Shown piece by piece: positions 300-50,079 of a stretch of 64,000 nucleotides of DNA. A program made the translations under genes and the position numbers. Below the pieces are notes generated by a model. That model ran no database searches and was not told the origin of the DNA. It saw only the letters and a program-made list of their open reading frames with translations. Every line of letters starts with the position of its first letter. Position 1 is the stretch's first letter. Source of the DNA: Macrostomum lignano (lineage: Eukaryota); contig NIVC01002224.1 in the NCBI GenBank assembly GCA_002269645.1, forward strand, positions 1 to 64,000, in the 5' to 3' direction.

Positions 300-1060
300 C
301 AGAGTAGATTTGGTCATAGATATTCATATGCAATCAAAAGTAGATTGGTCATAAATATTCAATCAAAAGTAGATTTGGTCATAGATATGTAATTGAAAGT
401 AGATTTGGTCATAGATATGCAATGGAAAGTAGATTTGGTCATAGATATGCAATGGAAAGTAGATTTGATCATAAATATTCAATCAAAAGTAGATTTGGTC
501 ATAGATATGCAATTAAAAGTAGATATGATCATAGATGTTCAATGGAAAGTAGATTTGGTCATAGGTATGCAATGGAAAGTAGATTCGGTCATAGATATGC
601 AATGGAAAGTAGATTCGGTCATAGATATGCAATGGAAAGTAGATTCGGTCATAGATATGCAATTGAAAGTAGATTCGGTCATAGATATGCAATGGAAAGT
701 AGATTCGGTCATAGATATGCAATGGAAAGTAGATTCGGTCATAGATATGCAATTGAAAGTAGATTTGATCATAAATATTCAATCAAAGTAGATTTGATCA
801 TAAATATTCAATCAAAAGTAGACTTGATCATAAAATATTCAATCTAAAGTAGATTTGATCATAAATATTCAATCAAAGTAGACTTGATCATAAATATTCA
901 ATCAAAGTAGATTGGTCATAGATATGCAATGGAAAGTAGATTTGGTCATGGATATGCAATGGAAAGTAGATTTGATCATAAATATTCAATCAAAGTAGAT
1001 TGGTCATAGATATGTAATTTAAAGTAGATTTGGTAATATATATGCAATCGAAAGTAGTTT
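300..1060 (+). repeat. 30-bp minisatellite (GTAGATTTGGTCATAGATATGCAATGGAAA)n
   Basis: Tandem copies seen directly; they explain the 10-aa periodic ORFs 393..791 and 422..847. Confidence 0.95.
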
Positions 1061-1599
1061 TGAGTGGATTCGGTCATTCAACGTTCATTTGGTCATAGAC
1101 AGTTTTTAATGCAACAGTGCTCATAGACCAGTCAACCGAAATCAATGTTCATAAGTCATTACTAGCAACTGTGTCAAAGTTTGAAATTCTGCCTTTTATT
1201 GACTGCATTCCAAGCGCTTGTAAGTTGGGCTCAAAACACATTCTTTTACTATTTTTAGCATTTATTTTTTGAAACTTTTGAACCTTTGATGGTTTTTTGC
1301 TACCATTTTCATGCTAGCTTACTAGCAGTAGTAAAATTTGCGCAATAAATTTGTTGTTTTGTAATCTAGATTTTGTTAGGTTTTTTGTCTTGCCTGTTTT
1401 CTTCATGTCAGTGTTAGTTTTGTCAGAATATATGCTACTTTTCTGATCATGTAAAATTTATGATTATGTTGTTGGACTTTTTCAATTTCGCTATTTTTGT
1501 ATCAAAATCTTACCATAGAATAGAATAATCTAGGTCATGGAAAATTCATTGGTCATTGAACAAATTTCGGTCATTGAAAAAAACTAATCAGATATAGAC

Positions 1600-2912
1600 G
1601 GAACAGTCATCGGTCATAGACAAAACAGTCATCGGTCATAGACAAAACAGTCATAGGTCATAGACGGAACAGTAATCAGTCATAGACAAAACAGTCATCG
1701 GTCATAGACAAAACAGTCATCGGTCATAGACAGAACAGTCATCGGTCATAGACAGAACAGTCATTGGTCATAGACAAAGCAGTCATCGGTCATAGATAAA
1801 GCAGTATCGGTCATAGACAAAGCAGCCATCGGTCATAGACAAAGCAGTCATCGGTCATAGACAGAACAGTCAGTCATTGGTCATAGACAGAACAGTCAGT
1901 CATTGGTCATAGACAAAGCAGTCATTGGTCATAGACAAAGCAGTCAATGGTCATATACAAAGCAGCCATCGGTCATAGACAAAGCAGCCATCGGTCATAG
2001 ACAAAGCAGTCATCGGTCATAGACAGAACAGTCAGTCATTGGTCATAGACAAAGCAGTCATTGGTCATAGACAGAACAGTCAGTCATTGGTCATAGACAA
2101 AGCAGTCATTGGTCATAGACAAAGCAGTCATTGGTCATAGACAAAGCAGTCAATGGTCATATACAAAGCAGCCATCGGTCATAGACAAAGCAGCCATCGG
2201 TCATAGACAAAGCAGTCATCGGTCATAGACAGAACAGTCAGTCATTGGTCATAGACAAAGCAGTCATTGGTCATAGACAGAACAGTCAGTCATTGGTCAT
2301 AGACAAAGCAGTCATTGGTCATAGACAAAGCAGTCATTGGTCATAGACAGAACAGTCAGTCATTTGTCATAGACAAAGCAGTCATTGGTCATAGACAGAA
2401 CAGTCAGTCATTGGTCATAGACAAAGCAGCCATCGGTCATAGACAGAACAGTCAGTCATTGGTCATAGACAGAACAGTCAGTCATTGGTCATAGACAAAG
2501 CAGTCATTGGTCATAGACAGAACAGTCAGTCATTGGTCATAGACAAAGCAGCCATCGGTCATAGACAGAACAGTCAGTCATTGGTCATAGGCAAAGCAGC
2601 CATCGGTCATAGACAGAACAGTCAGTCATTGGTCATAGACAAAGCAGTCATCGGTCATAGACAGAACAGTCAGTCATTGGTCATAGACAAAGCAGTCATT
2701 GGTCATAGACAAAGCAGTCATCGGTCATAGACAAAGCAGTCACTGGTCATAGACAAAGCAGCCATCGGTCATAGACAGAACAGTCAGTCATTGGTCATAG
2801 ACAAAGAATTCATTGGTCATAGACAAAGCAGTCATCGGTCATAGACAGAACAGTCAGTCATCGGTCATAGACAAAGCAGTCATTGGTCATAGACAAAGCA
2901 GCCATCGGTCAT
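1600..2912 (+). repeat. 22/26-bp minisatellite (GTCATTGGTCATAGACAAAGCA / GTCAGTCATTGGTCATAGACAGAACA) in the intron upstream of the Maf exon
   Basis: Tandem copies seen directly; the array ends about 20 bp before the acceptor CCACAG (AG at 2931-2932). Confidence 0.95.
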
Positions 2913-2932
2913 ACGCACCGCTGCATCCACAG

Positions 2933-3439
2933 GCGAGCGCCCTGCCAACCTTTGAATCCTCCGAATCCTCGGTCGCCCCGACCGATTCGGACGACTGCAG
3001 CTTGGCCGGCATCCCACTCTGGCTGTCCGACGCTCAACTGGCTGGGATCCCTGTCCGGGATCTGAACCGGCTCATGGAACAGCAGCGCCTCACGGAGGAC
3101 CAAATCGCCCGAGTGAAGCGCTACCGCCGCATGCTGAAGAATCGCGAATACGCCCTGTCGTCCAATCGTAGAAAAGACGAACTGTGCGCCGATCTGGAAC
3201 GGCAGCGCGACGAACTGCGTCAGCTGGCCGCGTCGCAGGCGGCGTCGCTTCGTGCCCACCGTGGCCGAATTGAAGATTGGCAGGTGAAAATTGCCGGCCT
3301 TGAAGCCCTGCTAGACGGTCGGGCTGAGCTGCAGCAGTTGCCCGACGGCTTCTCCATGATGCGTCCGAAGGATGAGGCTGCGGATGCTGCTGGGGACTGC
3401 AGCACAGTGCCCAAGTCTACTGGCTACCAGTATCACTGA
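2933..3439 (+). CDS. MAF: Terminal coding exon of a Maf-family bZIP transcription factor (5' exon(s) not found, probably outside the window)
   Basis: GIPVRDLNRLMEQQRLTEDQIARVKRYRRMLKNREYALSS resembles the Maf extended homology plus basic region (SVRELNR...[23 protein letters not shown]) and is followed by a Leu heptad. Acceptor CCACAG|GCG is in frame; stop TGA ends at 3439; AATAAA at 4582-4591. Confidence 0.8.
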   Translation, partial: ASALPTFESSESSVAPTDSDDCSLAGIPLWLSDAQLAGIPVRDLNRLMEQQRLTEDQIARVKRYRRMLKNREYALSSNRRKDELCADLERQRDELRQLAASQAASLRAHRGRIEDWQVKIAGLEALLDGRAELQQLPDGFSMMRPKDEAADAAGDCSTVPKSTGYQYH

Positions 3440-3544
3440 GTCAATGGGGGCTCTGTTTACTGTTAGCATTTCAGCATTGTAAATTGAATGGCGTGTTTTC
3501 CTAGTAATCGTACCTGGTATATTAACTAAACAAACTCTGTCTAA

Positions 3545-4400
3545 TCCCATCTCCCCTTCAATTGGATCCCATCTCCCCTTCAATCAGGTCCCATCTCCCA
3601 TTCAATCAGGTCCCATCTCCCCTTCAATCAGGTCCCATCTCCCCTTCAATCAGGTCCCATCTCCCATTCAATCAGGTCCCATCTCCCCTACAATCTGATC
3701 CCATCTCCCCTTCAATCAGATCCCATCTCCCCTACAATCAGATCCCATCTCCCCTTCAATCAGATCCCCTCTCCCCTACAATCTGATCCCATCCCCTCTT
3801 CAATCAGGTCCCATCTCCCCTAAAATCTGATCCCATCCCCTCTTCAATCAGATCCCATCTCCCCTTCAATTAGATCCCATCTCCCCTTCAATCAGATCCC
3901 ATCTCCCCTACAATCAGGTCCCATCTCCCCTACAATCTGATCCCATCTCCCATTCAATCTGATCCCATCTCCCCTACAATCTGACCCCATCTCCCCTTCA
4001 ATCAGATCCCGTCTCCCTACAATCAGATCCCATCTCCCTTCAATCAGATCCCATCTCCCCTACAATCTGATCCCATCCCCTCTTCAATCAGGTCCCATCT
4101 CCCCTAAAATCTGATCCCATCCCCTCTTCAATCAGATCCCATCTCCCCTTCAATTAGATCCCATCTCCCCTTCAATCAGATCCCATCTCCCCTTCAATCA
4201 GATCCCATCTCCCCTACAATCTGATCCCATCTCCCCTACAATCTGATCCCATCTCCCCTACAATCAGGTCCCATCTCCCCTACAATCTGATCTTATCTCC
4301 CCTTCAATCAGATCCCGTCTCCCTTCAATCAGATCCCGTCTCCCCTTCAATCAGGTTCCATCTCCCTACAATCAGATCCCATCTCCCTTCAATTAGGTCC
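3545..4400 (+). repeat. 22-bp minisatellite (TCCCATCTCCCCTTCAATCAGG)n in the Maf 3' region
   Basis: Period of 22 bp seen directly (copies at 3546, 3568, 3590...). Confidence 0.95.
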
Positions 4401-4751
4401 CAAGTCTAATTGCATTGGTTGCCCTCACAATGACATTGCGTAGTACATGATGAAGTCTGCAAGTTATATGCATGATATGTATGTTCAGATTTTAACAATG
4501 GTTATGTCTATGTTTCATATCTTCAATTCCATGTACATATAAAAGATCTGTCCGTTGCTTTAATTTGTTTATACTGTGCTCAATAAATAAACGTCAATGA
4601 CTTTTCTGATATCGTAAAGGTTTTTTAGTTATTTTCTAAAATGGCGTTGGAATTTGTTTCCTAGAAAAAGTTGTTACCAATTGGCTTTAAACTTCACCAT
4701 TTAGATTGTGAATTATTTACATTTTTCCCGCAGCTGAGCTGACATATTAAC

Positions 4752-7700
4752 ATGACCGCTCTATTAAAATCTGTTACGGTGAGTTACATTTCTCGAATAA
4801 TCACATCATGTTCTAGTATCTAATCCACCCTAATAATCATCCCTAATCCACCCTAATAAGCATCCCTAATCCACCCTAATAAGCATCCCTAATCCACTCT
4901 AATAAGTATCCTTAATCCACTCTAATAAGCATCCCTAATCCACCTAATAAGCATCCCTAATCCACTCTAATAAGCATCCCTAATCCACCTAATAAGCATC
5001 CCTAATCCACCCTAATAAGCATCCCTAATCCACCCTAATAAGCATCCCTAATCCACCCTAATAAGTATCCTTAATCCACCTAATAAGTATCCTTAATCCA
5101 CTCTAATAAGCATCCCTAATCCATCCTAATAAGTATCCTTAATCCACCCTAATAAGAATCCCTAATCCACTCTAATAAGCATCCCTAATCCACCCTAATA
5201 AGCATCCCTAATCCACCCTAATAAGCATCCCTAATCCACCCTAATAAGCATCCCTAATCCACCCTAATAAGCATCCCTAATCCACCCTAATAAGTATCCT
5301 TAATCCACCTAATAAGCATCCCTAATCCACTCTAATAAGTATCCTTAATCCACTCTAATAAGCATCCCTAATCCACCTAATAAGCATCCCTAATCCACCC
5401 TAGTAAGCATCCCTAATCCACCCTAATAAGCATCCCTAATCCACCCTAATAAGCATCCCTAATCCACCCTAACAATCATCCCTAATCCACCCTAATAAGC
5501 ATCCCTAATCCACCCTAATAAGCATCCCTAATCCACCCTAATAAGCATCCCTAATGCACCCTAATAATCATCCCTAATCCACCCTAATAAGCATCCCTAA
5601 TCCACCCTAATAAGCATCCCTAATCCACCCTAATAAGCATCCCTAATCCACCCTAATAATCATCCCTAATCCACCCTAATAATCATCCCTAATCCACCCT
5701 AATAAGCATCCCTAATCCACCCTAGTAGGCATCCCTAATCCACCCTAATAAGCATCCCTAATCCACTCTAATAAGCATCCCTAATCCACCCTAATAAGCA
5801 TCACTAATCCACCCTAATAAGTATCCCTAATCCATCCTAAAAACCATCCCTAATCCACCCTAATAAGTATCCTTAATCCACCTAATAAGCATCCCTAATC
5901 CACCCTAATAAGCATCCCTAATCCACTCTAATAAGCATCCCTAATCCACCCTAATAAGCATCCCTAATCCACCCTAATAAGCATCACTAATCCACCCTAA
6001 TAATTATCCCTAATCCATCCTAATAAGCATCACTAATCCACCCTAGTAAGCATCCCTAATCCACTCTAATAACCATCCCTAATCCACCCCCGCAGGGCCT
6101 CCGCGTGATGGTGACGGGCGGTGCCTCTGGCCTGGGCGCGACAACCGCAACCCAGCTGCTCAACCGAGGTGCTCGCGTCCTCATCGTTGACGTGGCCGAG
6201 TCCAACCCGACGACAAATGCCGGCTTCTGTCGGGCCGACATTACGGACGAGTCCGGCGTCGCCAGCGCGATGTCGGTCGCCGAGAAACAGCTTGGCGGAC
6301 TGGACGCCGTGGTCAACTGCGCTGGCGAAGGCCTGGCCGCTCGGATGTACAACTGGAACAACGACACCGTCTTCAACCAGGATGACTTTCGTCGACTCCT
6401 GCAAGTCAACGCGCTGGGAACCTTCAACGTTTGCCGACTGGCTGCTCAGCTGATGGCAAAGAATCAGCCTGCTGCTTCTGCTGCTAGGAAAGACAAGAAG
6501 GCTGCGAAAAAAGCTGCTGCTGCCACTGATGCTGCTCAGCGAGGCGTGATTGTTAACACGTCATCTCTGTCTGCGTTTGATGGACAGGTGAATGTTTATG
6601 TTGGGATAGGCTTGCTGTTTGAGTAGGTAATCTGGTGTCTAAGTAGGTAGGCTCTGGTCTCTGAGTAGGTAGGCTCTGGTCTCTGAGTAGGTAGGCTCTG
6701 GTCTCTGAGTAGGTAGGCTTTGTGTCTGAGTAGGTAGGCTTTGTGTCTGAGTAGGTAGGCTTTGTGTCTGAGTAGGTAGGCTCTGGTCTTTGAGTAGGTA
6801 GGCTTTGTGTCTGAGTAGGTAAGCTCTGGTCTCTGAGTAGGTAGGCTTTGTGTCTGAGTAGGTAGGCTCTGGTCTCTGAGTAGGTAGGCTTTGTGTCTGA
6901 GTAGGTAGGCTCTGGTCTCTGAGTAGGCAGGCTTTGTGTCTGAGTAGGTAGGCTTTGTGTCTGAGTAGGTAGGCTTTGTGTCTGAGTAGGTAGTCTTTTG
7001 TGCCTGAGTAGTCAGACTTGGTGTCTAGGTAGGCAGTCTTTGTGTCTGAGTAGGTAGGCTTAGTGTTGAGTAGGTAGTCCTGGTGTCTGAGTAGGCAGGC
7101 TTTGTGTCTGAGTAAGTAGGCTCTGTGTCTGAGTAGGTAGGCTTTATGTCTGAGTAAGTAGTTTAGTTGTCTAAAGATGTAATAGCTGTGTTTTATGAGT
7201 TTTAGGGAGCGCCAATGTGGGCGGTTTAAAGTTGTAAACGGAGGAGACTTATTTCGTTAGAAAAAAACTTCATTTTTTTTTCACTCTCGCGGCAGGCAAC
7301 CCAGACGATGTACTCGGCCAGCAAGGCGGCGGTGGCCGCAATGACCCTGCCTCTGTCCAGAGATCTGGCACCGCTGGGTATTCGTGTCTGCTGCATCGCT
7401 CCGGGTGAGATCTCAACTGAATAGTCAACTTTAGAGCTTCCTGATAATCACATAGAGACACCCGGATTATCATCATTAGATCACCTTAAACGCGATCATT
7501 AAAATATCATGATAGCAATCCGATACCGCATGATAATTAACCTAATCACCCAAAAAAATCTTTCTCAAACTAACTCAAATATTAATCATCAAATTGCCTT
7601 GATGATCATCATCAACTCGCTCTGAGAATCATAATAAAATCACCCTGATAATCATCATCAAATCTCCCTGATAATCATCATCAAATCACCCTGATAACCA

Positions 7701-8342
7701 TCACCAAAGCACTCTGATAATCATCATCAAATCGCCCTGATAATCATCACCAAATCACTCTGATAATCATCATCATATCGCCCTGATAATCATCACCAAA
7801 TCACTCTGATAATCATCATCAAATCGCCCTGATAATCATCACCAAATCACTCTGATAATCATCATCAAATCGCCCTGATAATCATCATCAAATCACCCTA
7901 AAAATCATTAGACGGTCATTAGATTACTGTGATAATCATAAAAAATCTTCTTGATAATCATGAAGTCACCCTGATAGTCACTGGGCTGTGATTAAATTAT
8001 TGCAATAATCATCGAATCCCATTCTCCCCCAAACCTCAAACCGCAGGCTACTTCGACTCCCCGATGTGCGTACGCGACTCCTACCCGCCCCGGGTATTGA
8101 AGTTCCTCGCCGACCACAACCGCGCCATCTACCGGCTGGGTCGGCCGACAGAGTTCGCGGACGCGGTAGAGATGATCCTGCTCAACCCCATGCTCAACGG
8201 AGTCTGCCTCCGGTTGGACTCAGCGTCTAGGGGATTTTTCTATCACCGACGCCAGAAAGCCGTGCCGCTGGTTGCTAGGGACGCTCCGGCAACTGTTGAG
8301 GACTCAGGGGCTGGTGATACTACTGCTGAAGTAGCTCAGTAG
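4752..8342 (+). CDS. HSD17B10: HSD17B10/ABAD-like short-chain dehydrogenase/reductase, 4 exons, ~307 aa
   Basis: Exons 4752-4778 (MTALLKSVT), 6096-6587 ([14 protein letters not shown]...NCAG...RGVIVNTSS...FDGQ), 7296-7404 (YSASK catalytic motif, [18 protein letters not shown]) and 8047-8342 (RLGRPTEFA...[12 protein letters not shown]). All joins are GT-AG and total 924 nt in frame. Confidence 0.88.
4820..6086 (+). repeat. 23-bp minisatellite (CTAATCCACCCTAATAAGCATCC)n filling HSD17B10-like intron 1
   Basis: Tandem copies; the last degenerate unit merges into the acceptor CCCCGCAG ending at 6095. Confidence 0.95.
6630..7160 (+). repeat. 21-22-bp minisatellite (TGAGTAGGTAGGCTCTGGTCTC / TGAGTAGGTAGGCTTTGTGTC)n in intron 2
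   Basis: Tandem copies seen directly. Confidence 0.93.
7640..7900 (+). repeat. 23-bp minisatellite (CTGATAATCATCATCAAATCGCC)n in intron 3
   Basis: Tandem copies seen directly, with degenerate flanking units. Confidence 0.9.
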
Positions 8343-8891
8343 TCACATCAGTTTATTTTTCCGCCAATTTGCATTGCATCATCGGGATCGTATGCATTTC
8401 ATATGAAAGAAACGAACTAAGCTTTTATAACTGTGTGGCTTAGATTTTATTTTGGCAAAATTGTCAAACAATAAAATTCAACACATTTTGTATGCATAAA
8501 GTAAACTAAAGTTGCTTCGAAAGCGCTGCACGCGTGTTTATTTATTTCTTAATTTGCATAGAAAGCTAGTGGACCCATTGAATGTCAGCAAATTACACGG
8601 AAAAATACTTTATATCCTAGTTGGTTGAGTAGTTGGCAGAGTTTGAATAGTGTCATAACAAAAACTGAAGTTCTCTTTTTTACGCGCACATCTAAAAATA
8701 GAACTGGGCATACCGAACTTGATTGTACATTTATTTGTACGAGGGCGTACCCGGCTGGTTTACAGTGCCAGTGTCAGTCTTCTGCCTTAACAGTACGGTG
8801 TTTCTTTTATTTTACTTCTCTTTCTTTTATGTTATGTTGCACATAAAATGCGTGTTATTTTTTATTTAACAAGATGAGGGAAAACGATGTT

Positions 8892-9911
8892 TCAACTTGA
8901 CTCATAAGGGACTCGTCCAGGTTGCGACTCGAGCTGGGCCACCCGACGGTTCAGCCTTTCAATCTCCGCATCCCTCTCTCCCAATGCGGCAGTGTTGTGA
9001 TCTTGCTCTGCAGCCAGTTGAATGTTCTCCTGCCTCAGCTGCTGGTTCTCTTCGTCCCTCTCGTGCACCATGCTGTACACCTGCAACACTTGAGTCATAG
9101 AGCCAATGAGCTGCTCAGTCAGGTGCATGGGTCCCATGAGGACCTTCTCCTCCAGGAATTGTAACTCCCTGTCGTAGGCCTGTAAGGTGGCTTCAACTTG
9201 ATGGAGAATCTCAGCTTGACGCTCCAGTTTAGGGACGCTCAGCTGTGTCTCTGAGACAGCTCTGGTCGTCCCGAATGCAACTGCGGCGCCGGCAGCTCCT
9301 GCAGCTACGGCCAGCGGAGCCCCTCCACCAAGGGTGGCAATGCCGAGAATGGCAGCTATCCCAGCTACAGCTGCCATCGCTGCTGCCTTGCCGTAGCCCC
9401 ATCGCCGCGTGCTTTCTGCTTCTTGGTACAGCTGGGTGAACTTTTGTTCAAATTCTTTGATAGCTTTTTCGAATAACTCTCGCAGGTTTTCAATTTCCTT
9501 TAAAAAGTTCGACAAGTGACTCCCGTAGCGCTTCGACGTGCTGGTTGTTTTCTCCAGCCCCTTCTTCATCTCTGAGACCTCGTCTGCCGTTATCCTGCGA
9601 CCTTCAATCATCTTGCGAAGGCAGTCTTCAATCTTCTTGTGCTGCTCTTGTAATGGGAGACCAAATTCGTTAATTTCATCGATTCTCTTTTTGCAATCGT
9701 TCAGTTTAGACATTGCTTCTTGGAACATTGTCGCGTCGAAATCTTGCAGTCTTTCGCACTTTTCGTGCAAAGCTTGCAGCCTTTCCTTTGTTGCCTTGAT
9801 CTCCCTTATGGCTTCAGTCATCTTGTGCGCTGCTTTTAACACATCGGCCCAGGCTTGGAAGCTTTTAGCCATCTCCGAAGTCTGCTCCTGGCTGGACAAG
9901 TTGTCAGACAT
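8892..9911 (-). CDS. Orphan ~339-aa alpha-helical/coiled-coil protein with a central ~39-aa Gly/Ala hydrophobic hairpin (ApoL- or ClyA/Hbl-like architecture)
   Basis: Uninterrupted non-repetitive ORF with first ATG at 9911 (MSDNLSS). Charged amphipathic helices flank AAAMAAVAGIAAILGIATLGGGAPLAVAAGAAGAAVAFG. The family assignment is inference only. Confidence 0.75.
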   Translation of the reverse strand: MSDNLSSQEQTSEMAKSFQAWADVLKAAHKMTEAIREIKATKERLQALHEKCERLQDFDATMFQEAMSKLNDCKKRIDEINEFGLPLQEQHKKIEDCLRKMIEGRRITADEVSEMKKGLEKTTSTSKRYGSHLSNFLKEIENLRELFEKAIKEFEQKFTQLYQEAESTRRWGYGKAAAMAAVAGIAAILGIATLGGGAPLAVAAGAAGAAVAFGTTRAVSETQLSVPKLERQAEILHQVEATLQAYDRELQFLEEKVLMGPMHLTEQLIGSMTQVLQVYSMVHERDEENQQLRQENIQLAAEQDHNTAALGERDAEIERLNRRVAQLESQPGRVPYESS

Positions 9912-10793
9912 TATTCGGGTTGTAGCAGTGTATTCTAGCGTATAACAGGACAATTTTCCGTTTTGTGGTCTGGAGTGCCTCTCGTGTCCGATTGTACTGT
10001 TATATATCTACTGAGAAAATAGAACCAGTTAAAATTATCGTCTCGGACAAATTCTATTGGCTGCTCCGAGATCATAAAGCATATTCTTTTATGTACAGAA
10101 CAACTGTATGTATCCAGCAGCACGGCAGTATCTGTCGTGTCGTCCTAATTTCGCGTCTTCTTCATGGACAGTCGTCGGTGACGCGTTTCATCTTCAGCAG
10201 TCTTTGCTAATGCGCCATGTTTGTCGCGGCTAGCATGCGTCCGCAGCCATCGATATTGATCTGTATTCCTCTCGCCTCCCGGGGCCGTATCGTCTTCGCC
10301 GTGTCGACGAATCACCTGAGCTTTTCCTTGCTACGTTGAGCAACTTTCGCTGACGAAGGATCATTGGATGCCGAAAAAATTCTTCGATCTGAAACCAAGC
10401 TCATCGATGTCTGTCCCATAATAACCAAGGTTCTTATTGGCCAATGGTTATCTTTGCTATTTAATTTTGCAGTTGTCCGATATTTTTACTTTAGTCTCCA
10501 CGAGTAGATTATGAAAACAATGACTGCCTCGGGGACAGGGATGCTTTCTACTGAACCGTTCCGTCTTCATGGTCAGTGTTGCGTCAGACTTTTTATTCTT
10601 ATTTGAGAAAACTCGATCTATATGCAACATGCAAGGTTAGCCTGGTTAGCTATACTGACTACTGACTAAGTAGCTAGCTGAAGTCTCTTATACACGATAT
10701 TGCATTTACCGAATCACTGACAGCAGTTCCTGATTGGGAGTTTCAAACCAGGTGGCAATTCTGCAATTCCGCCTCAGTGCAGCCTTGCCAAGC

Positions 10794-11010
10794 CTCCAAA
10801 TTTCATCAGCACGTCGACCGCATGCGTCTGCATCAGCTCTGACTTTGTTGGTCACTGGCCTTCAAGAGCTTCTAGACATTCAACAGGTGGCACCAGGTGA
10901 CTATGAACACCCTGTTGCGACTTTCTCTGAGTTCGCTGGATCTAGCCTCGACAGGGAGAATACCTAAAGTGCTGTGTATCCTCAAACATCCCGTCATTAC
11001 CCCGACGCCT
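10794..11010 (+). repeat. Dispersed repeat copy 1 (homologous to 16977-17220)
   Basis: Shared CTCCAAATTTCATCAGCA...CTGCATCAGCTCTGACTT...CTGGCCTTCA...TGGCACCAGGTGACT. Confidence 0.8.
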
Positions 11011-11947
11011 ACCTTTACCGGGTACGGGTGACACCTGGCGATCGACGGGCCGAGGTATTCCATCATACCTTTTACATGTCTGACGCTCTTAAAAATTATT
11101 TTCAAACACAAGGATGGCTACTATAATTGCGAGTTCGCTTAAAGGTATTGCTACTCATCGGCTATTAATATTTTAATTGGCAAGTTGTTTACCTCGTAAA
11201 CTGTTAATTGAATCGCACTTTTAAAAAGGGTCTCGCTTTTAAAAAACTACTAAATATTTATGAATTGACTGTGATGCAAATTAAACTTAAGATCTTAAGA
11301 TCAAGTATCAATTACTTTTTCGTTTAAAAACGAAGGAAGTTTTACGCAAAAAGGCCGAAGGATGAGGGCTGCTACCAGGACACAAAAATTCCTGCATTCG
11401 AGTCTGCAGTTGCAAGTAGCTAGCTATATGATAGAAATATATACTTGAGTGTAGTGAGCATATTTCTAGTGCAAGAGCTAATCGCTTTGGGCAAGCAGAT
11501 CAGGAAAGCACGAGCACCCCCCGAGGAGAAGAGAAGGTTTGCATCATGTACAGCTCTTGCACTTACGAGTTGGCTGCAAGCAGTTGCTGATCTAGTTTGC
11601 CTAATACCCGTCTGAAATGCCGCCCAATTTCCTTAGCAGAATCCTAAGTTGAGGCCCCCATCCCGCCGCATGTCTGTCTGCTTAGGGCGGCTCCCAGAGG
11701 GCAAGCGAGAGATTGGCCGCAAATGCATGCAAATTCAATTGGGAAATTGCTGTGACATGTGAATGCATGATTACAAGCACAAGTGAGAATTATGTTGCTT
11801 ATTTAGTTCCGGGGGCAATGCTCCACGTTTATTCATCAAAAAACGGTTGTAGTGCTGAATTCTATAAACTTTTGCCTCAATTGTCCCGCTAGGCAGGATC
11901 TTAATTTAGGCCTAGTGAAAGTAAAGTTCTACCAAGGTGTATGAGTA

Positions 11948-12330
11948 GGGGGGGGGCGTAGTGGTTAAGTGCGGCGCCCTGATGTATCAGTGGCGCAGGC
12001 TCGATAATTTTGGGACTAAATTGAAATCTCGGCTTGGCTCTGCTCGTGCAATCAACGCCCTTGAGGACCAACCCCCAAGGCACTGTGAAGTGTACATGCG
12101 TAACGATAAATGTAGTTAGGACCGCTGTACACTCCTGTGTGAGTGTGTGCCTGTGCGTATGACTGCGTACGTATCCGCGCGCTTGTGTGCCTGCTCAGGG
12201 GAGTCGGGTGGGAATGGGCAGTAATACCTCTTGGCGTTTGTGCGACAGTGTCGTTTAAAGTGCGCCAGGGTGCACACAGCCCCCTGCCTCTAATAAATTT
12301 TTTATCAGTGACTTGATTACTGTGTAATTA
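11948..12330 (+). mobile_element. Possible tRNA-derived SINE
   Basis: G-run start, A-box-like TAGTGGTTAAG (11959-11969) and degenerate B-box GGCTCGATAAT (11998-12008) at tRNA-like spacing. The 3' limit is uncertain and only one copy is present. Confidence 0.35.
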
Positions 12331-13046
12331 CTATTGAATACCTCTTGAAACCCTCTTACTCTTACCAAGTTACCAACTATGGGCTCCAGAGCACGAGGCC
12401 CTTCTAATACTGTATTGATACTGAATCACCCTGTTATGATGCTCTGAACCATGGCAGAAATAGTCACAGCTGTCAGTTCAATCAAATGCATGCAATTTAC
12501 ATGCAGTTGGACACCATGAACTTCGATAAGGAAACTGCACACACGCTATAGGCCTGCGATTGAGAAAGTTATTAATCAAGAAATAACAGCTTGTCATGGA
12601 ATAAATTGATATTGCACCCTAAAACTCTCATAAAGAATCGGAGGAGTAGGGATATTGCTGTGAGTAGGTTGGAAATTCATTCTAATAAAATGGTGTGCAT
12701 ATACGAGTGTACAGAGTGAACTAATATATTTGTACGTGACCATATTGCCGATGGTCACCTCCCAGCCGTATAGTTGGAGAGAGGAAAATACTGGGTGTGG
12801 GAGACGGCCGAGAATTTATTAGACTGCCGGCCAATCCTCGATGAGCGAATGACGGTGGAGAAGAGGGCGAACGATAGAAAAAGGCAAGTGTATAAAATAA
12901 TAATGCGGTTCAAGTCATAGCGCTGCCTTCCAGACCTGATTTCGCGCTCACCAATTTATGCTGAAACTGCCATTGTACGCACGAGTTGGCCATGCGCGCG
13001 CGCTGCAGACAGTCCAGCATCTGCTGATCCTCACTGCTCCATCGAG

Positions 13047-16000
13047 ATGCCGCTGCAGAATGCAGCCTCCAGGCGGAAGGGCTGGTGCACTCGGCTGAAC
13101 ATTCGCGCCGACAACGCCAGATTCCTGCTGCTAGCTGTGCTGATGCTGGTGTACATGCTTGCTGGCGCTGCCGTCTTCATGGCCATCGAAGGCCCCAGAG
13201 AGCGGGTGGAGAAAGCCAAGTACTTCAAATTTGCTCAGGACTTTCGCGCTCGCTACGCCGCGGTGCTCAATCTCAGCGAACTGGACGACTACCTGAGCTT
13301 GCATGCTGACGCATTCACATCCGGCTACCTGACCGACAGGCGACCCCGGTGGGACTATTCAGGCTCTTTCTACTTTGTTGGCACTGTTGTCTCTACCATT
13401 GGTGAGGCCAAAACAGAGTACTTTTTAAATTTAAACTGGTGGCAGCTAGGTTCCCAGTCTAGTTCAACAAAGCTGATGTAAAATCTCGCCATTACATTAC
13501 TTGGATCACCATTTAAAGTTTATTAAGACGGGCCAACATCGAATTCTGTCACCGGCATGAGGTAGAACTCAGTTTTGTAGTAAAGAACTGAGAGTGAGAG
13601 AGTGTGTGTGGGAGAGAGGGGGAGAGAGAGGGAGAGTGAGTGAGAGAGTGTGTGTGAGAGAGAGGGGGCGAGTGAGAGTGAGTGAGAGAGTGTGTGTGAG
13701 AGAGAGGGGGGGAGTGAGAGTGAGTGAGAGAGTGTGTGTGAGAGAGAGGGGGAGAGAGAGGGAGAGTGAGTGAGAGAGTGTGTGTGAGAGAGAGGGGGGG
13801 GGAGTGAGAGTGAGTGAGAGAGTGTGTGTGAGAGAGAGAGGGGGCGAGTGAGAGAGAGTGAGAGCGAGGAGTGACAGAGAGAGGTATAGAGAGAGAGGGT
13901 GAGTGAGAGTGAGTGAGAGTGAGAGTGTGAAAGAGAGAGTGAGAGAGAGTGTGTGTGTGAGAGAGTGAGAGTGTGTGTGAGAGAGAGAGGGGGAGTGAGA
14001 GTGAGAGTGAAACACAGAGAGAGTGACTGAGAGAGAGTGTGTGAGAGTGAGAGTGTGTGTGACAGAGAGAGGTATAAAGAGTGAGAGAGAGTGAGAGAGA
14101 AATGGAGAAGGCCGGGGTGTCATAAATCTGGTGCGGGAGAAAGCAAAAGCGCTGCTGATTTCTGTTGGGAAACCGGCAGGGGATCCAGCAGCAGAATTTA
14201 CTGTGCCACATACGCAGTTATGATTTCCCGGCACAACCAGATATTTGCTGCTTAGCCCCCACCCAGCTGCATTCTATCCACTAGCAAGCATTCTGACCCG
14301 GCAGAAACACAGGCGCACAAAGCAGCACAGAGAGGCGGTATCGGATTCGTTGCCAGGAATTCTCCTTGCACCATTGCGACTCCTCTATCGCAGATTTTTC
14401 CGCCAAAGTGATTAAGCGTGTTTCGCCTCGACCTCGCCATTGCCTCCCGCTACCCTCAATCTTTTCTTCTCCTGGTTGTAAAATATTATTAAAAGTCGCT
14501 GCCCTGTGAGTTTGGCGATTCTTGAACCTTTTCGGCTAGTTGAATTATATCTGTGTGTGTGGTCTGTCATTTATAAATGTTCGCCTCTCTGTGTAATCAC
14601 TCCGTTCGTCAATCAAAACTGGTTTTGCGGAACTGGTGCGTACTGATCTGTACCAGCAGCTGCGAATGCCGCTTTCAGATCAGATCGCCAAGGGCCAGAT
14701 AGGTAACCTAAGTGCATTGGTACGGGCCAGAGGAGGGGACAGAAAGGAGAGAGAAGAGGGGAAAGATCAGAGTAAGAGGTGAGGAGAGGGAATAAAGTCA
14801 AAGAGAGGAGACAAGGGGAGAGGAGAGGAAAGGAAAGGAGAGGAGAGGAGAGGAGAGGAGAGGAGAGGAGAGGAGTGAGGAAAAAAGGAGTGGAGTGGAG
14901 AGGAAAGGCGAGAAAAGAGAAGAGAGAGGAGATTCGAGAGAAGGGAGCTGAGAAGAGACAGAAAGCTTGAGCCCTTCCGGACCTTGAGCCACCTGGTATC
15001 AATGCTTTACTGCAGACAGCAACTTATTTTGTATGCTAGGATCTTAGCAAAACTATCAGCGTCCATCCCAAAGTCTAGACCCACAGTTACTAAGTCGCAT
15101 ACGAGTTGCTGTGTAAGGAATTCCCAGGAGAAATCGATCCAGCAGCGAACTGAGATGTGTGAACCGATTCACTGGGATCGTGAGGATTCTATTAATTGTT
15201 AGCTTTGCCTCGATCGGAAATGCCAATTCCAAGAATTGCACATCTCCGGAAAATTGGCGCCATCCATCCTAACGAATTGAGTTTTAGTTCCATGGCGACG
15301 TCTCTGATGGTAGTCTGAGATTGTAGAATGCTCGCTTCCCGAAGAAAAAATTCCCCAGCATCGAGTCAAGTGGCCCAGAAACTGGAAACTGAGAGCGCAC
15401 CCGGGGTTCTGTTTTCCTTATCTGAATTATTCACAGCTTCTTCAGGTGAAGAAGTGGGTTAAGCTGAAGTCAGTCAGTAGGTCAGTGCACTGGTACACTC
15501 ACACTTTTCACTCACCGCTCTTCTTGTTCACCTGCTGCTGGGAAACATGCTGGTGAACCTTTGCCGAGGGTTCGTGAAAGAAAGAGAACAAGGGACACCT
15601 GCAGTTTTTCCCAAGCCTCTTTCGACTTCGGGAAAAAAACAGTTTAAAAATCCTAATTTTTCCCTATAGCTACTCTCGAACTTGCATTTCGCTTCGTAGG
15701 TATGACCGAAAGCGTTTTTATTTACAAAATATTCAAAAAAATTGTCAATTAGATATCGGAAAGCTAAAAATAGCGAAATTTTTGTAAAGAAAACAAAAAC
15801 CTTTTCGGTCCAGGGCTTTAGAGAAGCGACTCGATCTGTATTCCCAACAGGCAGAAACGAAATCAAGTGATTTATTTTCATCAACTCTCCTATAAGCATA
15901 TACAGACACACTGAGAGAGAGACGGGGAACTGTCAACACACACCCAGAGCATCGTCACGAGGCTATTGCGTGCGTCTGTCAGTCTGCCAGTCAGGAATTC

Positions 16001-19000
16001 AATATCAGTTTATCTGATGCATTACACACAGACAGTTCTACCAGCTAATAATGTCAGCGGCTTATTGCCGGCAGTGTCAGGCTCGTGTCTCCAGCTTTGA
16101 TAAGACAAATAAATGTGTAGGTCGACAAGGGACGTGAGACTGGATACTTGGATGGATAAATTAAAATGGCTTAGAGTCTGTACTGTATCGTAAAGGATTC
16201 AGCAACCGACTTAGAAGTGAAATGGACTACTCCAATTCCACAAACCACTTGTAGCCTAAATGTGCTTGGACCATCTTATAGTCTTCGTTATCTTAATCTT
16301 CGTTAACTGTCGATCTTACCTCTTGATTAAGTTCGCCATGCAGAAATTAAAGTGACCCGAACTAAGCTTTTAAAGGGCCTCAGGAAAAAAATGGAGTGAA
16401 GTCACGCAGCTCCACTTTTGAGCAGGTTTTAACCAATTCAAGGAGCACGAAGTCGGGCTCAATTTTTGTTGCGCACCTTCTCAAACAAGAATCCAGTCTC
16501 CAACTCTCCCCATTAGCGCCATCTATGCGCCAATCAGCACTACGCCTCTGTGCTGCCTTTGCCAAGCCTAGAAGACATTGACTTGTTGATTCTTAACAGA
16601 TCTTGTCTATCTTCTTGGGTTGCTGCGCAAGTACTTTCAAGAACGTGCAAGATCTTCGTTATGATAATATCACTATGATATGATAATACTTAGGTAAACT
16701 TACCAGATCTGGGCCACTTGCTACATCGTACAAGATCTTAACTTTTAAAATCTTTTTATAACTTCGAATCGCATATTTTATTAAATTTATTGTCCCATTT
16801 TGCCATAAAATAAAAAAATAATAAAGCTAGAACACTTAAGCCAAATGAATGACAAAACAAATGTACCTCCCTTCTTAGAAGTCCTGCAAGAACCGAGCAG
16901 ATTGAGAAGATCTGCCAACAATAGCACAGAGACAAGATCTGCTAAGTCTTAGAAACAGAATCTCCTCTAGGGAAGTCTCCAAATTTCATCAGCAAGTGGA
17001 CCACGTGTGCCTGCATCAGCTCTGACTTCGTTGGTTACTGGCCTTCACCCAGGCGGAGCTTCTGGACCTTCATTCAACAGATGGCACCAGGTGACTGGTG
17101 TGGATACCAGCTGTTGCAAATTTGATCTCTGGTCAAGCCTCGAAAGTGGACAAGCCTCAACTGCTAGACATCCCTAGCTAGTCTCTCAAGCATTCGATCG
17201 TCATGCAAACGGATTCGCCTCCTTCAACGATAACGACACCAGGCAACTATTTATAGAAACCGGAAGCTATAGTCTATGGCCAAGCCTGCAAATTTAAAGC
17301 GTCCTCTTGTTCGCACTACGGCTCTTTTCGGTCGCAATGTTGACACAATGTTGAGCAATCTAGGTGTCTTAAGACCGAACAAACCGTGCACTCAGAGGCC
17401 ATTTTCTCTACCACCAAATTGTCCCGAAACCACCTCATTTGGCTAAAGAAGGGTGGCGCGCCAAAACTCGATTTGTTTTCCTATGTGAGCGTTCGCTTAT
17501 CCATCTTATTTTGCCGGATCAATTGTGAACTGAGAGTTGGCTAGAGCTGGTGCAGCTGCAGTCTTAGTGGAGTCTGATTGCCTTGTTGTGAAATTAGGAG
17601 TGGCAGGCGTGGCCAACAAGGATGCTGCAGTGATGGTGTCGTGCAGAGAAATTATTGAGCAACTCGCCAAGTAATGTTATAGTAAGCAGATCGATGAGTT
17701 AAGAAGCTGAACAGTTGTGTCGGCTTTTTGTGCGGCGTGCTCATCGAGCTGAGAGAGGGAGTGTGCGGGGAGGGTGAGAGAGGGAGGGAGAGGGAAAGTG
17801 AGAAGGGAGAGTAAGAGAGGGAGTGTGGTAGAGGTAGAGGGAGCGAAGGAAATTAAAAGTGAGTGAGGGGGAGAGTGGGAGATGGAGGTTGAGATTGAGA
17901 GTGAGAGAGGGAGAGTGAGATAGGGAGAGGGAAAGGGAGAGTGAGAGAGGGAGAGGGAGAGTGAGAGAGGGAGAGGGAGAGTGCGAGAGGGAGAGGGAGA
18001 GTGAGAGAGGGAGAGGGAGAGTGAGAGAGGGAGAGGGAGGGAGGGAGAGGTAGAGGGAGAGAGGGCGAGGTAGAGTGAGAGAGGGAGTAGAGTGAGATAG
18101 AGTGAGATAGATAGGGAGAGTAGAGTAGAGTGAGATAGGGAGAGGAAGAGGGAGAGGGAGAGAGGGAGAGGGAGAGTGAAAGGAAGAGGGATCAGAGTAA
18201 GAGAGGGAGAGGGAGAAACGAAGGTTGAGATTGAGAGGGGAAAGTGAGATTGAGAGGGAGAGTGGGAGAGGGAGAGGGCAAGGGGAGTGAGAGTGAGAAA
18301 TTGAAAGAAGGATACACATCATTAAGGGAATAAATGCTGAGATCTGCAGCTCTGTTAAGACCATGACCAGATCGAGTTAGGCAAAAGATCGCAGCCAATG
18401 AGACAGGAAAAGACAAATTTACTTTCCAAGAACGGATCGATTCCTCCAGTCGCGTGCCGCGCACAACGCAACGCTCAAAAATCTCAGTGAAAGTGCAATT
18501 CAATTAGATGGCTGGGTCACAATTGCATTAGCAAGTCAAATTCACCAGATTGATGGCTGTTTCGCTTTTGGGGAGCTGCCGTCGCCTGGAGGGCAGACGA
18601 TATCTCGTAAGATGCTTAATTTGAAAGAAACTTCTTCGCAATGAAAAACAACTTGAGAGTAAACAGCGAAAGTTCGTTTAGATGATTTCATGAAAACGTT
18701 TGCTCAATTCAAGATGAAGAATACCAGATTCAGAATCCTATCAGGCTATCAGGGAAATAAAAGGTTAAATGAATTGCATAGCACAATGGCTTGAAAATAA
18801 AATATTGTAACTCCAGTCAGACACCCACCCCACTCCAGTCAGACACCCACCCCACTCCAGTCAGACACCCACCCCACTCACATTAGACACCAACCCCACA
18901 CCAGTCAGACACCAACCCCACTCCAATCAGACAGCAAACCCACACCAGTCAGACACAAACCCCACTCCAAACAGACACCAACCCCACTCCACTCAGACAC

Positions 19001-21130
19001 CAACCCCACTCCACTCAGACACCAACCCCACTCCATTCCCAGGGTTCGGAATGACCACGCCACGCACCATCGCTGGAAAGGCCCTGGTGATCTGGTACGG
19101 CTTCCTTGGCTGCTCAGGAGCCATCCTGTTCTTCAACCTGTTCCTGGAGAGGATCATCACCTTCTGGGCGCTGATCCTCCGCCAGCTGCACCAGCTGTCC
19201 AGCCGGCTCAAGGCGGCTCGCAAGCGTCGGCGAGCTCGGCAGTCAGGCGAGCTGCAGTACGAAACGGCCACCGTGACAGCGGCGGCTACCGCCCAGTCCT
19301 CAGCAGCCTCACCGTCGGGACCTTCAACAGACAAGACCGTCGGAGAAGGCTCTGCCGACTCGCTAGACAGCTGGAAGCCTTCAGTGTACAAGGTGCAATT
19401 CCTGCTGCTATGCACCGCCTGTGGCATCGCATGTACAGCCTCGGCCGTGTACCAACCTGTTGAGTCGTGGACCTACTTCGACTCGGTGTACTTCTGCTTT
19501 GTCGCCTTCTCGACCATTGGATTCGGCGATCTGGTGGTCAGCCAGCGGTCGGATTACGCATTTAGCACGCTGTACCGTGTGGGCAACTTCTGCTTTCTGA
19601 TGCTGGGCTGCTGCTGCATCTATTCCTTCTTCAACGTGACCTCCCTGGTGCTGAGAACCATGCTGGACAGGATGATCCGGAGGCTGGACTGTCGGTGCAC
19701 CAACTGCCTGCGGCCCAAGGCCAAGATGAGGACGCTGCCGCCGCCGCCAAGGTTCAGGAGGAATGCCATCACGGAGAGAGACGTGGAGGAGCAGGTGAGC
19801 CCCAATACCCGCTCTATCATTACCCCAATACCCACTCTATCATCGTCCCAATACCCACTGTATCATCGCCCCAATACCCACTCTATCATCGTCCCAATAC
19901 CCACTCTATCATCGCCCCAATACCCACTCTATCATCGTCCCAATACCCACTGTATCATCGCCCCAATACCCACTCTATCATCGCCCCAATACCCACTGTA
20001 TCATCGCCCCAATACCCACTCTATCATCGCCCCAATACCCACTCTATCATCGCCCCAATACCCACTCTATCATCGCCCCAATACCCACTCTATCATCGCC
20101 CCAATACCCACTCTATCATCGCCCCAATACCCACTCTATCATCGCCCCAATACCCACTCTATCATAGCCCCAATACCCACTCTATCATCGCCCCAATACC
20201 TACTCAATCATAGCCCCAAAATCCACCTCTCCACTGCCCCAATACCCACTGTATCTCGCCCCAATACCCACTATCATCGCCCCAATACCCACTCTATCAT
20301 CGCCCCAATACCAACTCTATCATTCCAATCACTCTAATACCCAATCAAGAATCGCCCCAACACCCAGTCAAGAATCGACCCAACACCCAGTCAAGAATCG
20401 CCCCAACACCCAGTCAAGAATCGCCCCAATACCCAGTCAAGAATCGCCCCAATACCCAGTCAAGAATCGCCCCAATACCCAGTCAAGAATCGCCCCAACA
20501 CCCAGTCAAGAATCGCCCCAACACCCAGTCAAGAATCGCCCGGATACCCAGTCAAGAATCACTACTCCAATACCCAGTCAAGAATCACTACTCCAATACC
20601 CAGTCAAGAATCACTCCAATACCCAGTCAAGAATCACTCCAATACCCAGTCAAGAATCGCCCCAACACCCAGTCAAGAGTCGCCCCAATACCCAGTCAAG
20701 AATCGCCCCAATACCCAGTCAAGAATCGCCCCAATACCCAGTCAAGAATCGCCTCAATACCCAGTCAAGAATCGCCCCAACACCCAGTCAAGAGTCGCCC
20801 CAACACCCAGTCAAGAATCGCCCCAATACCCAGTCAAGAATCGCCCCGATACCCATCGCGCAACCGCAGGCCAAAGACGCGGTTCACGAGGCCCGGAGGC
20901 TCAAGCGCCAGTCGTTCGACTCGAATTACGACTCGGACCGGTCGGACTTATCCGACGAGCTCATCTGCATGCAGGACTTCCTGCGACCCAACAAGGTGCA
21001 CCTCATCCAGCTGCAGAAACAGCTGTTCGAGACCGCCCAGCGGGCGCGAGAACCCGACGACGGTTTCAAAGGCGGCGTTGGTCCGCTGGCCGTGGTCAGT
21101 CAGAAGTTCGACGCTGAACCGGCGTACTGA
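13047..21130 (+). CDS. KCNK13: Two-pore-domain K+ channel, THIK subfamily (KCNK12/KCNK13-like), 3 exons, ~455 aa
   Basis: Exons 13047-13401 (DNARFLLLAVL...WDYSGSFYFVGTVVSTIG), 19043-19794 (FGMTTPRT...WKPSVY...YFCFVAFSTIGFGDLV) and 20870-21130 (ELICMQDFLRPNKVHLIQLQKQL...FKGGVGPLAV). Two TIGFG filters and THIK-type C-terminal motifs; 1368 nt in frame. Confidence 0.92.
13590..14105 (+). repeat. Compound (GA/GT) microsatellite, purine-rich
   Basis: Runs of GAGAGTGA/GTGTGT seen directly. Confidence 0.9.
14735..14960 (+). repeat. (GAGAG/GGAGA)n polypurine tract
   Basis: Seen directly. Confidence 0.85.
16977..17220 (+). repeat. Dispersed repeat copy 2 (homologous to 10794-11010)
   Basis: Shares the anchor sequences of copy 1 in the same orientation. 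Confidence 0.8.
17745..18310 (+). repeat. (GAGAGG/GAGAGT)n polypurine tract
   Basis: Seen directly. Confidence 0.88.
18810..19035 (+). repeat. 22-bp minisatellite (CCACTCCAGTCAGACACCCACC)n abutting the K2P exon 2 acceptor
   Basis: The last unit CCCACTCCATTCCCAG forms the acceptor itself (AG at 19041-19042). Confidence 0.92.
19800..20860 (+). repeat. Two adjacent 23-bp arrays (CCCAATACCCACTCTATCATCGC)n then (CCCAATACCCAGTCAAGAATCGC)n filling K2P intron 2
   Basis: Starts right after donor GT at 19795, switches unit near 20340 and ends just before the acceptor at 20869. Confidence 0.95.
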
Positions 21131-21249
21131 CTGTTTGCGAATGACCAATTCGTGTACTTTTAAATTATCGACATACATGTATTAAACATTAATCTTATGC
21201 GTCATTAAGTGGCCATGGCGATAGTAGTATACACTGTATGTCCATGTAG

Positions 21250-21875
21250 GTTAACAGGTTGGCGCCACTCTCCCTGTGTGTAACAGGTTGGCGCCACTCT
21301 CCCTGTGTGTAACAGGTTGGCGCCATTCTTCCTGTGTGTAACAGGTTGGCGCCACTCTTCCTGTGTGTAACAGGTTGGCGCCACTCTTCCTGTGTGTAAC
21401 AGGTTGGCGCCACTCTTAGTGTGTGTAACAGGTTGGCGCCACTCTCCCTGCGTGTAACAGGTTGGCGCCATTCTTAGTGTGTGTGACAGGTTGGCGCCAC
21501 TCTTAGTGTGTAACAGGTTGGCGCCACTCTTAGTGTGTGTAACAGGTTGGCGCCACTCTTCCTGTGTGTAACAGGTTGGCGCCACTCTTCCTGTGTGTAA
21601 CAGGTTGGCGCCACTCTTAGTGTGTGTAACAGGTTGGCGCCACTCTCCCTGTGTGTAACAGGTTGGCGCCATTCTTAGTGTGTGTGACAGGTTGGCGCCA
21701 CTCTTAGTGTGTAACAGGTTGGCGCCACTCTTAGTGTGTGTAACAGGTTGGCGCCGTTCTTTCTGTGAGTAACAGGTTGGCGCCATTCTCCCTGTGTGAC
21801 AGGTTGGCGCCACTCTTCCTGTGTGTATAACAGGTTGGCGCCATTCTTCCTGTGTGTATAACAGGTTGGTGCCGT
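21250..21875 (+). repeat. 29-bp minisatellite (AACAGGTTGGCGCCACTCTCCCTGTGTGT)n in the K2P 3' region
   Basis: Tandem copies seen directly. Confidence 0.95.
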
Positions 21876-22604
21876 TCCGTAAGTTGATGATTTTGCGCTT
21901 CAGAAATTGTTGTTCGAAGTTACTTTTGTCTGACCTTTGCTAGTTACAATTTTATGGTTTGTATTCGCTAACTTATCAAAATGATTACATAAGTGGTCAA
22001 AGCTGTACACTTTCAAAGAATGCATACAATAATTATTAGTGCAATATGTACTGACAAAGTAAACCAGTATACAATGTCATAAACATGAAAATCATTCTTT
22101 CCGTGCGAGTTTCTCAGCCACTTGCTTTCTAATTGCTTAGAGTTTTCCAATGCGTTTAAATTATCCGCCAGCAATGCTACTAAATTTTCACCATTAAGTA
22201 GACAAGTAGCGCATTTTACAGTCGAAAAATAAAATAAAACATCAAAATATGTAGACTAAAATATTGAAACGTGCACTCATCAACAAGAACCACAGTTGGG
22301 ACAATGCGAGAAGCAATTAATATAATTTACCTCATCAAATAAACAAAAGCAATCAGATGGGGCTGACAGTATTTCACTGCAGAGCAAAGCTTTCACAATG
22401 AAATCAGAACAAGCAGTATAAGGTAGAGAATGGCATCAAGGACTGCAAAATTTTACAGACTTGCTTGCTTCAATACAGTATCATGATCTCCAGACTTTGC
22501 TTCAAGGGGTCATCAAGAAATTGCAACGCTAATATAAAGTGGCCTGCGTACAGGATTACAGAATAAAGCTGTCCCTAAATATTGCGTCATTTAACTGAAC
22601 TTTA

Positions 22605-50030: not shown

Positions 50031-50079
50031 GTGTCAGCTGCTCAGTTAATTTTAATTGCATTGCATGCAACACCGCAGT

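Follow-up and report, generated by a model that had tools for sequence, protein, structure and literature searches.

An unannotated, intronless gene of Macrostomum lignano and its family of candidate membrane-inserting helical-bundle proteins

A 64,000-nucleotide stretch of the genome of the flatworm Macrostomum lignano (contig NIVC01002224.1, positions 1 to 64,000, hereafter the window) holds on its minus strand, at positions 8892-9911, an open reading frame (ORF) of 339 amino acids that contains neither introns nor internal stop codons. The analysis shows it to be an intact M. lignano gene that codes for protein and is missing from the annotation, and protein comparison places it in a multi-copy, partly tandem family with intronless coding bodies, found only in that species. 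Structure modelling predicts five long helices packed antiparallel in an elongated bundle; a hairpin rich in glycine and alanine joins helices 3 and 4 at one of its tips. The gene probably belongs to a lineage-restricted family of membrane-inserting helical-bundle proteins. The reading developed below, to which a probability of roughly 0.4 is assigned, is that the protein enters membranes conditionally; pore formation by it is no more than plausible. Coordinates are collected in Table 1.

Several properties of the ORF speak for a real gene. No other ORF in the repeat-free stretch 7909-13588 comes near it in length, and when that stretch was used to generate 200 random sequences of 64 kb, their longest ATG-initiated ORFs averaged 161 residues and never exceeded 279. 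Its top relative in an exhaustive phmmer search is a paralog fragment (E = 3e-30). The GC content of its third codon positions (GC3) is 0.59, within the range of 13 neighbouring exons (0.39-0.79) and next to the 0.59 and 0.61 of two anoctamin exons. The gene is judged real because the ORF is longer than all random controls, the paralog match is strong, the GC content is typical of coding sequence and an AATAAA follows the stop codon. The N-terminus of the protein is acidic and polar, and the protein is therefore taken to lack a signal or mitochondrial presequence. The exact product was found in neither of two protein indexes and no protein more than 40% identical to it exists among 1.84 billion representative proteins, so the gene counts as unannotated.

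An earlier reading of the letters alone (the original prediction) had described most of this setting correctly. The intronless ORF is as claimed, with an intact translation longer than any of the 200 control maxima, and so is the missing signal peptide. The surroundings also agree: Tandem Repeats Finder detects no tandem array of any kind in 7909-13588, whereas arrays with units of 21-30 bp fill the neighbouring genes, and a short-chain dehydrogenase/reductase gene (HSD17B10-like; adh_short, E = 2e-21) on the plus strand, its stop codon ending at 8342, lies tail-to-tail with the ORF across the proposed gap of 550 bp. The claim of visibly more AT-rich codons was mistaken, since a codon-usage check puts the GC3 of the ORF inside the range of its neighbours.

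The family was found by an exhaustive phmmer search over the 1.84 billion representative proteins, which returned five proteins, four from M. lignano and one from Pelomyxa. The Pelomyxa protein (P0003, 845 aa) matches weakly and only over a repeated coiled-coil stretch, and was discarded as spurious. Word-indexed searches with the 339-residue protein and with a five-sequence profile brought nothing new, probably because low-complexity Ala/Gly words swamped them. At least seven paralog lineages are present in M. lignano, counting the window protein; identity to it is 13-47% in the other six, which share 13-63% with one another. All paralogs have an intronless coding body, and their flanking genes are unrelated. 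The protein had been called an orphan, which holds across species, as no credible relative from outside M. lignano exists among the 1.84 billion proteins and the other flatworm proteomes there gave no match, and fails within the genome. Likewise, the missing introns had been presented as a peculiarity of this one copy: the ORF is indeed intronless, but the trait is common to the whole family. The count of paralogs and their taxonomic range, for which a check had been proposed, thus came to at least seven lineages in one species. The apparent restriction to M. lignano partly reflects sampling: no other Macrostomum species appears among the matches, and the transcriptomes of such species may lie outside the collection.

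The closest paralog (L001:10001-10971, plus strand; BOX15_Mlig021359g1) matches the window protein over its full length at 40-47% identity. It spans two reading frames with one frame change and is annotated as 171 aa only; the two pieces were compared separately and never joined. The frame change is seen in a long-read-based assembly and is either a real change or an assembly error. The two loci share no synteny, and their nucleotide similarity is confined to 150 nt of coding sequence. It lies at a block at the start of helix 5, the most conserved part of the alignment, where 23 of 28 residues are identical as against 45% over the whole aligned half; the block may be an interaction site. Further members are organized in several ways. 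P0004 and P0008 are two homeologous copies, 98% identical. P0005 stands in a tandem cluster (L003) with two more intact intronless paralogs of 317 and 296 aa, and P0004 lies on the same contig about 50 kb away. The P0006/P0002 lineage occurs on three contigs, its coding body a single exon after a short 5' exon. One source labels P0002 an I/LWEQ protein, a label dropped here: a Pfam scan gave no such match, the best being Dor1-like and just under threshold. The gene identifiers of the paralogs, looked up for expression data, appear neither in the full-text literature nor in the supplements of M. lignano papers that were searched.

The hairpin comprises 41 residues, none of them charged and 63% of them Gly or Ala, in good agreement with the uncharged stretch of about 39 residues originally placed at 9270-9387. 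Two halves of about 19 residues each (arm 1, aa 176-194; arm 2, aa 198-216) are joined by the turn GGGAP, and both ends of the hairpin are flanked by Arg/Lys and Trp/Tyr/Phe. Insertion energies, summed with a position-independent form of the insertion scale of Hessa et al. 2005, amount to -0.3 kcal/mol for arm 1 and +5.0 kcal/mol for arm 2, and in the paralog hairpins the most favourable windows of 19 residues give +1.5 to +2.4 kcal/mol. At six of eight distinct loci an uncharged stretch survives, 36-49 residues long and 44-63% Gly+Ala. One tandem copy has it in eroded form, and the P0006 lineage has lost it while retaining the flanking helices; this loss suggests that the bundle can stand alone as a soluble domain.

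The AlphaFold2 model of the 339-residue protein, built from a five-sequence alignment, has a mean predicted local distance difference test (pLDDT) score of 74 and a predicted template modelling (pTM) score of 0.56. A small bridge between loops 106-107 and 262-263 implies that the chain folds back to give a single antiparallel bundle whose other tip carries the hairpin. P0005, a paralog with just 20% identity to it, was modelled with this five-helix plan as well, at lower confidence (pLDDT 62), so that the layout originally proposed, long helices followed by a hydrophobic hairpin and more helices, is predicted for two members of the family. The ClyA family of pore-forming proteins is defined by a five-helix bundle whose membrane-active moiety sits in the connection between the central helices (PMC6162564), and in its member AhlB the C-terminus of helix 3 and the N-terminus of helix 4 together form the hydrophobic head (PMC6602965). 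As modelled, the five-helix plan with its insert is a match to that definition. In Foldseek comparisons with the PDB, ClyA-family chains make up 36 of the 50 top matches of the window protein and 31 of the 50 of P0005; the 36 represent nine proteins of the family (AhlB, AhlC, SmhB, MakA, MakE, ClyA, Hbl-B, Hbl-L1 and NheA).

Sequence and profile searches, run with the 339-residue protein, four paralog sequences (one as two pieces) and family profiles, gave no significant Pfam, NCBIfam or PDB match. The best Pfam match of the protein is the hydrophobic N-terminal domain of RTX proteins (PF02382), aligned to aa 137-270 across the hairpin and below threshold (19 bits against a gathering cut-off of 26.8; E = 0.0012). 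This match is probably compositional, and it is absent from the five paralog sequences or pieces scanned. A PDB sequence match between the C-terminal part of helix 5 and the Hv1 C-terminal coiled coil (E = 0.011) is not significant.

How might such a protein work? In the proposed mechanism the five-helix bundle would be the soluble, cytosolic form and the marginally hydrophobic hairpin its membrane-active element, which on some cue would insert into a cellular membrane as a two-helix hairpin. The small residues on the hairpin faces would favour tight packing of protomers. The protein would then permeabilise, remodel or simply insert into membranes under particular conditions, acting like the ClyA-family alpha-pore-formers AhlB, AhlC and SmhB or like intracellular ApoL, while being a demonstrable member of neither group. 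Conditional insertion is favoured because the hairpin is marginally hydrophobic, the bundle survives its loss and the protein has no signal peptide; the sub-threshold PF02382 alignment across the hairpin was also counted on this side.

A number of observations weigh against this reading. Searches for ClyA/HlyE, Hbl/Nhe and Xax found no match in Pfam, NCBIfam or the PDB, even at E values up to 10 in the last. The models rest on alignments of 5-9 sequences, and pLDDT falls below 50 over aa 173-208, most of the hairpin. The best Foldseek E-values are 4.3e-3 (window protein) and 2.2e-2 (P0005), none reaching 1e-3, and template modelling (TM) scores are mostly 0.2-0.4, rising to 0.5-0.6 solely where short AhlC chains set the normalisation. 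Scattered among the ClyA-family matches are de novo helical bundles, syntaxins, axonemal inner proteins and an F-BAR domain. In a control against a viral structure library, unrelated tail fibres, tape-measure, SNARE and TelA-like proteins were returned at E = 7e-3 to 0.3, with 'probabilities' as high as 0.99. The ratio of nonsynonymous to synonymous substitution rates between two homeologous paralog copies is 0.48, which with 8 differences is uninformative. Finally, the Arg/Lys and aromatic flanks of the hairpin and the arm 1 sum of -0.3 would fit an ordinary integral hairpin equally well. With E-values and TM-scores this weak and viral controls that do as well, the likeness to ClyA is a matter of gross architecture, reproducible as such between the two models, and is not evidence of homology. 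The layout said to be held in common with ClyA-type toxins therefore stands as a plan that tops the Foldseek lists, and gains no support from a significant match or a profile link.

Could the hairpin be a permanent anchor instead? On that view the protein would be constitutively integral to the membrane: the hairpin, with its 19+19 residues, would form a two-helix anchor with both ends in the cytosol, and the long helices would build a coiled-coil or bundle scaffold on an organelle, with no part in pore formation or in any toxin-like action. A layout of coiled coil, transmembrane hairpin and coiled coil is that of mitofusin C-terminal regions and MCU-type proteins. Either arm has the length needed to cross a bilayer, the arm 1 sum is -0.3 kcal/mol, the Arg/Lys and Trp/Tyr/Phe residues at both ends are what the positive-inside rule and the aromatic belt lead one to expect, AlphaFold2 leaves the hairpin untucked from the bundle, and the noise-level Foldseek matches also include proteins of syntaxin/SNARE type. 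Against an anchor, arm 2 and the paralog hairpins are too weakly hydrophobic for typical stand-alone transmembrane helices, one paralog lineage has dropped the hairpin and kept the remainder, and a fast-diverging, tandemly duplicated, species-restricted family would be unusual for a housekeeping scaffold. The anchor is a quite possible explanation, slightly less likely than conditional insertion.

The proposal of conditional insertion can also be narrowed to a macrostomid family of cytosolic alpha-pore-formers with the ClyA-type plan, not a recent bacterial import, whose tandem duplicates with and without a head would serve as effectors in cell death, immunity or predation; put so specifically, it is rather unlikely. 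Still less likely is a silent or decaying paralog, an intact ORF that is unexpressed and has no function of its own. The gene is missing from the transcript-derived GenBank annotation, no identical or more than 50% identical product was found in any searched collection, and the closest paralog is split over two reading frames in the assembly. Set against this, the 339 codons are free of stops with the architecture fully preserved, and the AATAAA and TATA-like motifs are at the expected places. Moreover, gene models overlapping repeats were filtered out of that annotation (PMC5730564). It also omits the neighbouring and plainly real gene for a two-pore-domain potassium (K2P) channel and one intact family paralog in L003, and absence from it therefore says little about expression.

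The two remaining explanations fare worst. A domesticated bacterial toxin of the ClyA/Hbl/Xax type, or a recent retrogene of an intron-bearing parent, would account for an intronless coding sequence, and the former also for a predicted plan like that of bacterial alpha-pore-formers, but either is very improbable: there is no prokaryotic or viral relative among the 1.84 billion proteins, pattern scans for the conserved C-terminal block (using a two-sequence C-terminal alignment) found none in GTDB genomes, IMG/VR or JGI metagenomes, the GC3 is ordinary, no poly(A) remnant or A-tract, target-site duplication or flanking direct repeat lies beside the ORF, and no paralog has an intron-rich coding sequence, the intronless body being universal in the family. 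The suggestion that the gene was retroposed or horizontally acquired accordingly has nothing to support it. Membership in the apolipoprotein-L family can hardly be credited either: ApoL1 has a similar layout (N-terminal helical bundle, hydrophobic helical hairpin, C-terminal zipper-like helix) and several ApoL paralogs lack a signal peptide, but the Pfam ApoL model (PF05461) gives no match to any of the six sequences scanned, at E <= 1 with the window protein and at E <= 0.1 with P0003 and four other members or pieces of the family, and no ApoL chain appears in PDB sequence or profile searches or among the top 50 Foldseek PDB matches of either model. Solved ApoL structures are partial only. 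The likeness of layout to ApoL in the original prediction is thus matched by no similarity of sequence or profile.

Beyond the gene itself, locus L008, which holds the second GOSR1 copy of M. lignano, is 100% identical to window 14305-35904 at the same contig coordinates, which places the window in assembly Mlig_3_7 (GCA_002269645.1). Two other M. lignano contigs (L009 and L006) are colinear with the window, their aligned pieces being about 79-99.8% and 76-97% identical to it, and differ from it chiefly in minisatellite arrays; the homeologous stretches lie on NIVC01001493.1 and NIVC01000725.1, and the parts compared end about 4.4-6.3 kb before the ORF. M. lignano is a neopolyploid with three subgenomes (PMC10733133), and the two colinear contigs fit that makeup. 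GA-rich arrays accompany the minisatellites of introns and intergenic DNA in the window. The K2P gene, uncalled in the GenBank record, illustrates how the annotation skips genes that overlap repeats; a 23-bp array at 19799-20855 runs into the reading frame of its last exon and gives rise to long ORFs in several frames. An element inside the anoctamin gene carries, by Pfam scan, a reverse-transcriptase domain and a phage-integrase SAM-like domain of the tyrosine-recombinase type, a combination that suggests a DIRS-like retroelement. The long-unit arrays near the G-patch gene generate ORFs of 100-550 aa that encode repeated peptides; they occupy several frames of both strands, and none has the look of genuine coding sequence.

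Table 1. Positions of the gene, its predicted parts and other features; window coordinates unless a locus is named
Feature	Position	Strand	Basis or remark
Complete intronless coding sequence, 339 codons + TGA	8892..9911	-	ORF list and translation
Start codon ATG	9909-9911	-	ORF translation
Stop codon TGA	8892-8894	-	ORF translation
AATAAA, polyadenylation-signal consensus, 26 nt past the stop codon	8861..8866	-	consensus match only
TATATAA, TATA-like motif, ~90 nt upstream of the ATG	10000..10006	-	consensus match only
Predicted long helix 1, aa 2-53	9753..9908	-	AlphaFold2, pLDDT mostly 70-85
Predicted long helix 2, aa 61-104	9600..9731	-	AlphaFold2
Predicted long helix 3, aa 109-170, leading into the hairpin	9402..9587	-	AlphaFold2
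Uncharged Gly/Ala-rich hairpin, aa 176-216	9264..9386	-	hydropathy and charge scan
Predicted long helix 4, aa 217-257 (helix of the model begins in arm 2, aa 199)	9141..9263	-	AlphaFold2
Predicted long helix 5, aa 266-329, heptad-like	8925..9116	-	AlphaFold2
Block most conserved with the closest paralog, aa 275-302, start of helix 5	9006..9089	-	23/28 identical
Intact 296-aa intronless paralog	L003:4988-5878	+	between two annotated paralogs; uncalled, a second unannotated family member
bZIP_Maf transcription-factor exon	2813-3439	+	E = 2e-13; its ORF starts within a 22-bp minisatellite array
K2P channel gene, Ion_trans_2 in two exons	13047-13481, 19051-20337	+	Pfam; head-to-head with the ORF
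Dense minisatellite arrays, introns and intergenic	326-7908, 13589-14100, 17750-23413, 24938-25593		units 21-30 bp, 9 to ~57 copies, 82-92% matches
GOSR1-like exon	24305-24763		99% identical to an M. lignano protein
Retroelement within the anoctamin gene	41513-43848	-	overlapping ORFs of 567 and 262 aa
Very long arrays of longer repeat units	48887-50548, 51664-52769, 54103-55832, 57399-62338		in and around the G-patch (RBM5/10-like) gene

Comparison with known systems places the candidate conditional membrane-inserting protein among several designs without assigning it to any. The hydrophobic N-terminal domain of RTX proteins (PF02382) resembles the flatworm hairpin as an Ala/Gly-rich, hydrophobic, helical region that inserts into membranes, but the flatworm protein has no RTX repeats. 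Mitofusin C-terminal regions and MCU-type proteins likewise place a central hydrophobic two-helix hairpin with positive flanks between long cytosolic helices; there is no sequence or fold match to them, and the flatworm hairpin is only marginally hydrophobic and dispensable in one paralog lineage. The ApoL1-6 family, a fast-evolving, lineage-specific expansion with some intracellular paralogs, uses its hairpin for membrane insertion, and its helical N-terminal domain, hydrophobic hairpin and C-terminal zipper-like helix follow one another as in the flatworm protein. The flatworm helices are much longer (44-64 residues), they have no Pfam, PDB sequence or fold match to ApoL, and no relative of the flatworm family was found outside Macrostomum.

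The ClyA family (especially the tripartite-toxin components AhlB and AhlC of Aeromonas and SmhB of Serratia, and also ClyA, Hbl-B and NheA) comes closest. Its members, like the flatworm protein, have about 260-360 residues and, as predicted for that protein, five long antiparallel helices; the hydrophobic element, again as in the predicted flatworm fold, takes in the last part of helix 3 and the first part of helix 4 (PMC6162564, PMC6602965). They are the top-ranked fold matches for two independent flatworm models, and the flatworm paralogs with and without a hydrophobic head recall the multi-component toxins of this family. The differences are equally plain: the structural match is not significant and there is no sequence or profile similarity; the flatworm protein comes from an animal nuclear gene, without secretion signal or bacterial relatives; and its head is modelled part as helix and part as coil at low confidence, has no beta-tongue and is 63% Gly/Ala, unlike AhlC-type heads, which are 15 residues long and Leu/Ile-rich (PMC6602965).

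As far as the searched literature reaches, five-helix-bundle pore-formers of the ClyA type are described only from bacteria, and alpha-helical membrane-permeabilising effectors of animals, such as ApoL, are poorly understood. Because transgenesis exists for M. lignano (PMC5730564), the localisation of the protein is directly observable. Were it to prove an ordinary hairpin-anchored scaffold, an unannotated gene and a defined orphan family would still be added to the M. lignano gene set. If the flatworm family does have the ClyA plan, it would stand out for its tandem expansion, its lack of any relative by sequence and its mix of paralogs that have or lack the hydrophobic head, and would be either an instance in which the soluble-to-membrane helical-bundle design evolved convergently, or a relic that has diverged from that design to an extreme degree.

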